A DNA stretch of 64,000 nucleotides from Octopus bimaculoides (Eukaryota): contig NC_069000.1 of assembly GCF_001194135.2 (NCBI RefSeq), forward strand, positions 863,307-927,306, read 5' to 3'. Of the stretch, positions 11,867 through 12,102 are shown in pieces; the first letter of the stretch is position 1; every line of letters begins with the position of its first letter. Below the pieces are notes generated by a model. That model did not search any database, was not told the origin of the DNA, and saw only the letters and a program-made list of their open reading frames with translations. The position numbers were made by a program, and so were the translations under genes.

Positions 11867-12102
11867 TGGAAGTTGAAGATTTCGTTGGGACACCCAGCTT
11901 GTGGCAGGTCACTCAAGCTCTGGCTTTCATCAGCTATTATCAACAACTTGGTCAGTGTGTTTATGTTCATTGTAAAGCTGGACGGACAAGAAGTGCCATC
12001 ATAGTTGCTTGTTATCTCATGATGGTGAGGCCAACTCTACTCTTCCATTCTCTGTCATTTAATTAAAAGACAAAGAAATATTTTATCAACAAAAGTGTGA
12101 AT
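11867..12102 (+). pseudogene. Inverted, 5'-truncated copy of PTPMT1 exon 3 plus 77 nt of the following intron
   Basis: Matches the reverse complement of 6042-6276 except one extra A in an A-run. Lacks the AG acceptor; no partner exons 1, 2 or 4 found on the + strand. Confidence 0.88.

Follow-up and report, generated by a model that had tools for sequence, protein, structure and literature searches.

The DNA considered here is a window of 64,000 nucleotides from Octopus bimaculoides (contig NC_069000.1, positions 863,307 to 927,306; all coordinates below count from the first letter of this window, the whole stretch that was analysed). Its minus strand carries the gene of the mitochondrial dual-specificity phosphatase PTPMT1 and, 5.6 kb upstream of the exon that encodes the active site, a second, inverted copy of most of this exon. 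A preliminary description of the locus, made from the sequence alone, had noticed this copy on the minus-strand path from a neighbouring coiled-coil gene (gene b) to PTPMT1 and had regarded it as a possible source of built-in double-stranded RNA. Its place on that path stood; what had been missed is that the copy has a splice acceptor and donor of its own and belongs to an older duplication. In RNA the copy is the core of a 257-nt non-coding exon by which PTPMT1 is joined to the upstream gene or to a distal first exon. We think it fairly probable that this duplication relic acts as an antisense leader exon of PTPMT1 transcripts that fold upon themselves, and that its identity with the catalytic exon is kept by gene conversion.

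The model of the PTPMT1 gene was obtained with the human PTPMT1 sequence as query and was afterwards tested against the splice sites, the RNA junctions, Pfam and PDB. It consists of four coding exons, all with canonical splice sites on the minus strand (a slash marks the splice boundary):

9682..9899, minus strand: first coding exon (tblastn), starting at the acceptor ttcag/ACAAATT, with the ATG at 9849-9847; the loose RNA end TTTGTCAAAAAACAATTTTAACCAATTTGT corresponds to 9870-9899.
8866..8946, minus strand: second coding exon (tblastn; exon-exon sequence in RNA run X28).
6119..6310, minus strand: catalytic exon ("exon 3" of the preliminary description), 192 nt, encoding EWKDLGVGFLQVEVEDF...VHCKAGRTRSAIIVACYLMM (tblastn, translation, AG acceptor and GT donor).
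4993..5115, minus strand: coding part of the last coding exon, joined to 6119 in RNA; the loose RNA end AAGAACCAGTGGGATG... maps to 5115.

The rebuilt transcript encodes 187 amino acids with a Pfam DSPc match (7.9e-16), and the best solved structure is that of PTPMT1 (PDB 3RGO/3RGQ, E 8e-36). The limits of the catalytic exon agree with a 192-nt RNA contig from X14. Its translation (...VEVEDFVGTPSLWQVTQALAFISYYQQLGQCVYVHCKAGRTRSAIIVACYLMM) includes the CX5R loop HCKAGRTRS at 6175-6149 within the DSPc fold, as is expected of PTPMT1 and of dual-specificity phosphatases. A protein search with the exon peptide returned only three distant dual-specificity phosphatase matches and no cephalopod protein. 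The first coding exon is preceded by a strong acceptor (tttttttttaatctcatttcag/ACAAATT) and therefore some non-coding exon must lie upstream of it. One of the PTPMT1 introns contains a perfect palindrome (5745-5809) with 32-nt arms and a 1-nt spacer.

The two copies of the repeat were delimited by an inverted-repeat scan of the window, by blastn and by DNA junction contigs:

6042..6276, minus strand: copy 1, of which 158 nt belong to the catalytic exon and 77 nt to the intron after it.
11867..12102, minus strand: copy 2, which in the minus-strand reading is antisense to the catalytic exon.

According to the scan, 6050-6276 and 11867-12093 are inverted arms of 227 nt that are 100% complementary; blastn aligns 6042-6276 with 12102-11867 over 236 columns at 99.6% identity, with one single-base indel in a T/A run. 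The 235-nt inverted match with one indel over the active-site codons and the splice donor, as first described, was thereby confirmed, and so were its diverged flanks, identity falling off within a few bases at both edges. The repeat is not due to chance, because a perfect run of 227 nt has a probability of about 1e-16 even at a background identity of 85%. Of the catalytic exon (6310-6119) the repeat contains 158 nt (6276-6119) with the HCKAGRTRS codons, but not the initial 34 nt; beyond the exon it extends over the GT donor (6118-6117) and 77 nt of the intron that follows. Terminal repeats of a mobile element were not seen around the copy in the repeat scan of the window. A recent isolated copy, or capture by a mobile element, was considered and set aside, since the copy is one of several colinear blocks that make up a larger inverted duplication (see below). 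Just above copy 2, at 12313-12346, there is a short repeat of very high copy number (about 5000x DNA word depth) that many diverged RNA contigs match.

Between the two copies the assembly has two N gaps (7080-7483 and 10615-10743), which place them on different assembly contigs. We therefore placed the read contigs of four DNA runs from three studies (X1, X2, X3 and X5) on both copies. All four flank-to-repeat junctions (5778-6079, 6247-6386, 11730-11896 and 12064-12400) were present in the four runs, with a junction word depth of a single-copy sequence (14-81 across the runs; in X1 48.5, 55.4, 65.5 and 53.1). The 227 nt common to both copies form a contig of their own, with its ends exactly at 6050/6276 and a depth of 105.3 in X1, 114.3 in X3, 144.2 in X2 and 23.2 in X5, about 1.4-2.3 times that of the junctions. 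Because all four junctions are found at about 1x and the shared part is about doubled, there are two real genomic copies with different flanks; the copy, which the preliminary description had thought might prove an artefact of the assembly, is genuine. How the three assembly contigs are ordered and oriented relative to one another is confirmed as well, since the RNA splice junctions 11795 to 9899 and 8866 to 6310 span the gaps on the same strand.

The exon formed around copy 2 and the exons spliced to it are the following:

11795..12051, minus strand: non-coding leader exon, 257 nt, holding most of copy 2 (RNA joints 13287/12051, 12700/12051 and 11795/9899).
12052..13286, minus strand: intron in the 3' untranslated region (3'UTR) of gene b, which removes the 51 nt of copy 2 above the acceptor (RNA joints).
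13287..13452, minus strand: last coding exon of gene b, with the TAA at 13321-13319, 32 nt before the donor (RNA contigs).
12700..12779, minus strand: alternative upstream exon spliced to the same acceptor 12051, with a GTGAGT donor (joint 12700/12051 in X31 and an 81-nt contig).

The acceptor of the leader exon (AG at 12053-12052), …tttctttgtcttttaattaaatgacag/AGAATGG, falls inside copy 2 in its antisense reading; the donor is GT 11794-11793, an alternative GT donor is found at 11827-11826, and the exon contains six upstream ATGs. On the upstream side, RNA contigs with the joint 13287/12051, which skips 1235 nt with CT..AC on the plus strand, that is GT..AG on the minus strand, were found in X14 (depth 15), X25 (6.8), X28 (46.8), X31 (8.3), X45 (675) and also X29; in X30 the joint was seen as a loose end. 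The far side of the joint (13287-13452) has 1 mismatch in 166 nt to arm 2 of the old duplication described below, arm 1 differing there by about 15%. On the downstream side, contigs that pass from the repeat, across its edge at 11867, into the flank specific to copy 2 were obtained from X28 (260 nt, depth 54.7), X29 (402 nt, 99.2) and X45 (549 nt, 265.7). They start at 12024 or 11896, stop at 11795 and go on with TTTGTCAAAAAACAATTTTAACCAATTTGT (9870-9899), the intron so removed having GT (11794-11793) and AG (9901-9900) at its ends on the minus strand. In X29 the contig continues for 300 nt past the junction, which are the first (218) and the second (81) coding exons of PTPMT1 plus 1 nt. X30 gave only a flank contig (25.9), the junction to 9899 not being seen in this run, and X31 a contig that ends at 11828 at the minus-strand sequence AAA/GTGAGA, which we read as the alternative donor of the leader exon.

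With 13287/12051 and 11795/9899 used as GT..AG junctions of the minus strand in several runs and two studies, gene b and PTPMT1 behave as conjoined genes; from a 30-nt contig overlap we infer that the two junctions occur in one molecule. Because RNA links gene b to 12051 and 11795 to PTPMT1, the primary transcript contains the whole 235-nt copy upstream of PTPMT1. Minus-strand RNA across the copy, which the preliminary description had expected, is thus found in spliced form. A distal promoter of PTPMT1 may be located at 12700-12779 or at 12153-12568; at the latter position, between gene b and copy 2, X14 and X25 have an unspliced RNA contig of 340-416 nt.

Some other observations concern the same region. 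In the raw RNA run X24 about 8 reads with few distinct starts cover 11706-11855, below the leader donor and in the lower leader exon, and do not enter the repeat; they are probably a handful of unspliced fragments. RNA of coiled-coil gene a, the paralogue of gene b at the other end of the old duplication, is present over 13324-13382 (depth 204 in X45, compared with 574 for gene b). The junction contig cannot separate splicing of gene a to the mirror acceptor 6092 on the plus strand, which would be antisense to the catalytic exon, because the 3'UTR donor and the next 30 nt are identical in a and b.

Two other interpretations of the RNA joints were tried. That the joint at 12051/12053 is an alternative PTPMT1 donor spliced to 3255 on the minus strand was rejected, the far side being that of arm 2 (1 mismatch) and the joint being canonical only on the minus strand. 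That copy 2 is a plus-strand coding exon is unsupported, since GT..AG junctions of the minus strand are the only ones that involve it; that the RNA contig over the exon carries the upstream flank of copy 1 was also counted against it. There is a plus-strand open reading frame of 66 amino acids (11866-12066; MEVEDF...HCKAGRTRSAIIVACYLMM...), the ATG of which is created by the base adjoining the repeat edge. No plus-strand junction or flank-specific RNA for this frame was found in the unstranded RNA data.

From these results we propose the following for transcripts that contain the leader. The antisense strand of the relic would have been taken up as the non-coding exon 12051-11795 of minus-strand transcripts, spliced after the stop-codon exon of gene b or after the small exon 12779-12700 and then onto the first coding exon of PTPMT1. 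Transcripts that run on through PTPMT1 would hold both arms, and a perfect stem, of 158 bp in the mature mRNA and of 235 bp in the pre-mRNA, where it would include the 5' splice site of the exon, would bury the active-site codons. For the rebuilt mRNA of 874 nt (leader plus four coding exons) a minimum free energy of -424.8 kcal/mol is predicted, with a perfect stem of 158 bp between leader 12024-11867 and catalytic exon 6276-6119 and a loop of about 410 nt. The duplex energies were calculated to be -312.7 kcal/mol for the 158 bp and -444.1 kcal/mol for the 235-nt form of the pre-mRNA, which extends over the 5' splice site. A stable duplex over the target exon, as is expected of an intramolecular substrate of ADAR, is predicted. 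As copy 2 is itself a spliced exon, the 158 bp of duplex would persist in the mature mRNA, beyond the nascent RNA. The built-in double-stranded RNA (dsRNA) of the preliminary description, with both copies in one minus-strand transcript and a duplex of 235 bp, is largely borne out for the structure of the transcript by the transcription through copy 2 into PTPMT1 and by the predicted fold, but no contig from the leader reaches the catalytic exon, and from the transcript structure we infer that both arms are present in one RNA molecule.

The stem would then likely be deaminated by ADAR, cleaved by Dicer or block translation, and PTPMT1 would be damped in the leader-containing transcripts. The six upstream ATGs of the leader, and the position of PTPMT1 as second cistron in the conjoined form, may act in addition. 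In the conjoined form the stop codon of gene b is followed by several exon junctions; a stop codon upstream of exon junctions marks RNA for nonsense-mediated decay in many animals.

The repeat is part of an old inverted duplication. Its arms and their colinear blocks, as found by self-comparison of the window, are:

941..6442: arm 1, with coiled-coil gene a (plus strand) and the 3' part of PTPMT1 (minus strand), defined by colinear inverted blocks.
11754..15392: arm 2, with copy 2 and coiled-coil gene b (minus strand), defined by the partner blocks.
941-1111 / 15392-15221: block pair of 72% identity.
1665-2049 / 14663-14280: block pair of 75% identity.
3070-3296 / 13474-13248: block pair of 85% identity.
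4463-4576 / 12972-12844: block pair of 71% identity.
5897-6276 / 12238-11867: block pair holding the repeat, 84% identity overall.
6344-6442 / 11844-11754: block pair of 66% identity.

The first three block pairs correspond to exons of the paired coiled-coil genes, of which gene a (arm 1) is encoded by the plus and gene b (arm 2) by the minus strand. The arms are old, since outside the repeat the identities of the blocks are low, as are those of the peptides of genes a and b, which are only about half identical. The name CCDC153 used for these genes in the preliminary description was not confirmed, Pfam giving no match for the conserved peptides. Below the repeat a GA-rich stretch and the motif (G)TTAATAAA are still recognisable in both arms.

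Against this background the repeat is an island of identity, 227 of 227 positions compared with 65-86% in the other colinear blocks, and a near-identity patch with sharp edges in otherwise diverged paralogous sequence is what a conversion tract looks like. The tract takes in 51 nt of intron above the leader acceptor and stops 72 nt before the leader donor; in PTPMT1 it leaves out 34 nt at the start of the exon and runs on for 77 nt into the intron. Because the tract thus ignores the exon limits on both strands, conversion fits better than selection base by base, and gene conversion between the arms appears, from the sequence comparison, to be the best explanation of the perfect identity. Conversion from arm to arm occurs in palindromes and inverted segmental duplications, for example in the palindromes of the human Y chromosome, where as here the identity of inverted arms is far above that of the surroundings; in contrast to the Y palindromes only a patch of 235 bp, perhaps together with one of 135 bp, has been homogenised here, the other arm sequence having diverged to 65-86%. 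The shorter patch is a second near-identity island (3162-3296 / 13382-13248; about 135 nt, 3 differences between the arms), which reaches in the coiled-coil genes from the last ~20 codons through the stop codon, 32 nt of 3'UTR and the GT donor to ~39 nt into the intron; directly upstream of it the coding sequence is ~60% identical. It flanks the same 3'UTR intron whose acceptor falls within the main repeat.

A parsimonious history would be as follows. An inverted duplication would have copied a coiled-coil gene and the tail of PTPMT1, head-to-head, to a position upstream of PTPMT1. The duplicated tail would have been lost to decay apart from a patch in which gene conversion has continued to exchange sequence with the working exon. 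The antisense strand of the patch would have supplied a polypyrimidine-AG acceptor which, together with nearby GT donors, made a minus-strand exon, and repeated conversion from arm to arm would keep both copies identical.

If the duplex is formed, A>G changes are to be expected in the exon. The comparison of contigs prints only differences away from the contig ends, and within the repeat the letters are known for four positions:

6266: T>C on the plus strand; depth 50.3 of 50.3 in X28 and 11.3 of 1277 in X29; synonymous, third position of an E codon.
6228 (= 11915): A>G on the plus strand in copy 2 coordinates; 12.5 of 786 in X29; Q>R.
6227 (= 11916): A>G on the plus strand in copy 2 coordinates; 12.5 of 786 in X29; same codon as 6228.
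6204 (= 11939): A>G on the plus strand in copy 2 coordinates; 7.9 of 782 in X29; Y>C.

All four of these changes, from RNA contigs of X28 and X29, are A>G in the sense of PTPMT1. The variant contigs of X29 have 3-5 mismatches in 55-89 nt and look like low-level hyper-editing. In the four DNA runs, which are from animals other than the RNA donors, there were no variants in the repeat. Heavy hyper-editing in X28 was considered and not borne out, since at 80% likeness an X28 contig covers 11795-12024 without mismatch. In the literature a search for lists of octopus editing sites brought up nothing for PTPMT1.

Several findings speak against self-folding leader transcripts. No read or contig joins the leader exon to the catalytic exon; the linkage ends after the second coding exon. 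The libraries are unstranded or of unknown type, so that the strand is given by the splice dinucleotides only. The lower flank of the leader exon was not seen in X14 and X25, and sample S10 (X14) instead has transcripts of the region 9900-10265 (0.86 of the sampled words, compared with 0.43-0.46 in four other runs). This region, which overlaps a dispersed repeat at 10055-10240, lies directly above the acceptor of the first coding exon, which suggests a proximal alternative leader or a retained intron; hence not all PTPMT1 mRNA carries the leader exon. The perfect identity of the copies requires no selection, a recent conversion event being sufficient. As for editing, of the clustered A>G changes in the exon that the preliminary description had expected only four positions were printed, most of them at ~1% in one run; the change at 6266 is at 100% in X28 and is shared by a low-depth contig of X29 over the same stretch, both runs being from the same study, so that polymorphism with carry-over between libraries is possible at this position. 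No T>C change in the same sense, as editing of the antisense arm would give, is among the listed variants, and no change in the exon was found in the raw RNA runs X24, X40 and X41 (depth at most ~15) or in the contigs of X14, X25, X30 and X45. What stood of the expectation is that the four printed changes are all A>G and absent from the DNA runs; editing of the exon by ADAR is suggestive only.

Among the other explanations, one is that the leader exon is a neutral by-product: a recent conversion would have homogenised the relic of a pseudo-exon, and RNAs arising by read-through and cryptic splicing, untranslated and probably unstable, would form a duplex without function. We consider this rather unlikely. 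It is in line with the disregard of the identity tract for exon limits, with the stop codon located 32 nt before the first of several downstream junctions in the conjoined form, with the six upstream ATGs, with the absence of the leader exon from X14 and X25, where another leader region is transcribed, with leader use varying between samples, and with the editing signals of ~1%. Against it, the junctions are abundant and not at trace level. In X45 the joint 13287/12051 has a depth of 675, near that of the last coding exon of gene b (573-801), the contig of the unspliced 3'UTR having a depth of 7.8, and in X28 the leader-containing contig (54.7) equals PTPMT1 (50.3). These depths, and the second near-identity island over the matching 3'UTR donor in both paralogues, are arguments for more than noise.

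For the A>G changes, rather than for the leader, there is the alternative that they are not due to editing but reflect polymorphism of copy 1 in some animals, such as a haplotype whose conversion tract is shorter; this would appear at ~1% in X29 via pooling or index hopping. This is doubtful in our view. A low-depth contig of X29 (6233-6302) has three mismatches including 6266 T>C, like the contig with 100% in X28 from the same study; 6266 is a synonymous third position, and editing of a long perfect duplex should scatter rather than be complete at one site. The X28 variant contig lies near the edge of the tract, which is a hint only of a polymorphism in tract length. On the other hand, four of four printed changes are A>G in the same sense, an X29 contig (6174-6262) has Q>R and Y>C in the conserved phosphatase fold, which were not seen in X28, and four DNA runs are without a variant in the repeat.

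A trans-acting natural antisense RNA would be an unlikely form of duplex: the exon would mainly be the end of the 3'UTR of gene b and would pair intermolecularly with ordinary PTPMT1 mRNA. The joint between the stop-codon exon of gene b and the antisense exon was found in every RNA set examined in which gene b is expressed, and the depth on the acceptor side is higher than that of the contig continuing into PTPMT1 (675 versus 266 in X45, 212 versus 26 in X30), but contig depths are means over whole contigs, partly shared by the two copies, and such ratios are rough. AATAAA is found at 11787-11782, 8 nt below the donor; a contig over 11794-11765, to be expected if the exon ended at this poly(A) signal, was not present in X28, X29 or X45. 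Pairing of sense and antisense RNA is a recognised source of ADAR substrates (PMC9989829); the splice to 9899 was nevertheless directly seen.

A selected self-silencer goes beyond the antisense leader that we favour and is quite unlikely in our estimate: concerted evolution would keep the leader complementary, and the choice of promoter would set the output of PTPMT1 via the hairpin. If this were true, transcripts that start at the distal promoter or in the upstream gene would be silenced, hyper-edited or cleaved by Dicer, and those with the proximal leader would be translated. Very improbable, finally, is an assembly artefact, in which a single real copy was placed twice or a contig was inverted, because, despite the location of the arms on different contigs with two N gaps between them and their perfect identity, all four flank junctions are present in read contigs of four DNA runs with about 2x depth on the shared part, copy 2's own flanks are used by spliced RNAs, and splice junctions connect the three contigs in the order and orientation of the assembly.

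Nearby inverted repeats in one transcript, such as inverted Alu pairs, are intramolecular substrates of ADAR (PMC9989829, PMC5625713). The antisense leader resembles these in that a long near-perfect duplex would arise from an inverted duplicate located at a distance of a few kb within one transcription unit; clustered A>G changes, expected there, are hinted at here. Unlike in the Alu pairs the repeat unit is the active-site exon of the host gene and not a mobile element, and the partner is an exon too. As both repeat partners are exons, the duplex would survive splicing and include coding sequence. Editing complementary sequences, as known for the Q/R and R/G sites of GluA2 and for insect and cephalopod channels, likewise are segments of the pre-mRNA pairing with a coding exon and its 5' splice site. 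They are classically short, imperfect, usually intronic and close by, and direct the editing of a few specific adenosines, whereas the pairing at this locus would involve 158-235 bp, would be perfect, and comes from 5.6 kb away, upstream of the start codon and without a specific recoding site shown.

Another likeness is to the hairpin RNA (hpRNA) loci for endo-siRNAs in Drosophila, which were born by inverted duplication of their target genes (PMC10317233, PMC10292708). There, too, an inverted fragment of a protein-coding gene yields dsRNA against the parent gene, but both arms belong to a non-coding locus apart from that gene, whereas here the working exon itself is one arm and its own leader provides the other. 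An inverted duplicate and transcription through the second arm into PTPMT1 were seen, and both arms would be in one RNA. According to a model for plants, miRNA genes arise via inverted duplication of the target sequence. In Drosophila editing through antisense read-through reportedly occurs at 4f-rnp/sas-10. Common to 4f-rnp/sas-10 and the octopus locus is that read-through of a neighbouring gene supplies RNA antisense to a coding exon. Pairing of this sense-antisense type (PMC9989829) comes there from overlapping genes of opposite strands, and here from an inverted paralogous copy between genes of the same strand. As in conjoined genes, two adjacent genes of one strand are connected by splicing, from the last coding exon of the first to the first coding exon of the second; the difference is that the bridging exon here is antisense to a downstream exon of the second gene. 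A search of the literature revealed no report of such an arrangement, and the one paper in which "PTPMT1" and "octopus" occur together has no bearing on it.

In animal mRNAs, long dsRNA is normally derived from intronic or UTR repeats. A leader exactly antisense to the active-site exon of its own mRNA would be an unusually clean natural test case. Coleoids have a very high ADAR activity. On a defined stem of 158 bp in a coleoid, editing, dicing and block of translation could be measured, and isoforms with and without the leader compared. A fragment of a duplicated gene that has become an exon on the opposite strand, and is kept identical to its source by conversion, would also be a plausible first step towards hairpin RNA loci. 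The annotation is corrected in that PTPMT1 has non-coding upstream exons and in several samples is conjoined with the neighbouring gene.

Two further inverted matches were noticed in the window. The one between 7572-7798 and 33846-33620 is likewise of 227 nt and 100% identity, its second copy ending at an N gap that starts at 33847. It belongs to a dispersed repeat family, because there are four diverged copies (74-82%) at 1275-1457, 20258-20446, 32716-32889 and 47735-47917; the perfect pair beside the gap may be an effect of the assembly. The other match, between 6941-7079 and 34200-34049, has 91% identity, and its first copy reaches up to the end of the contig ahead of the N gap at 7080.

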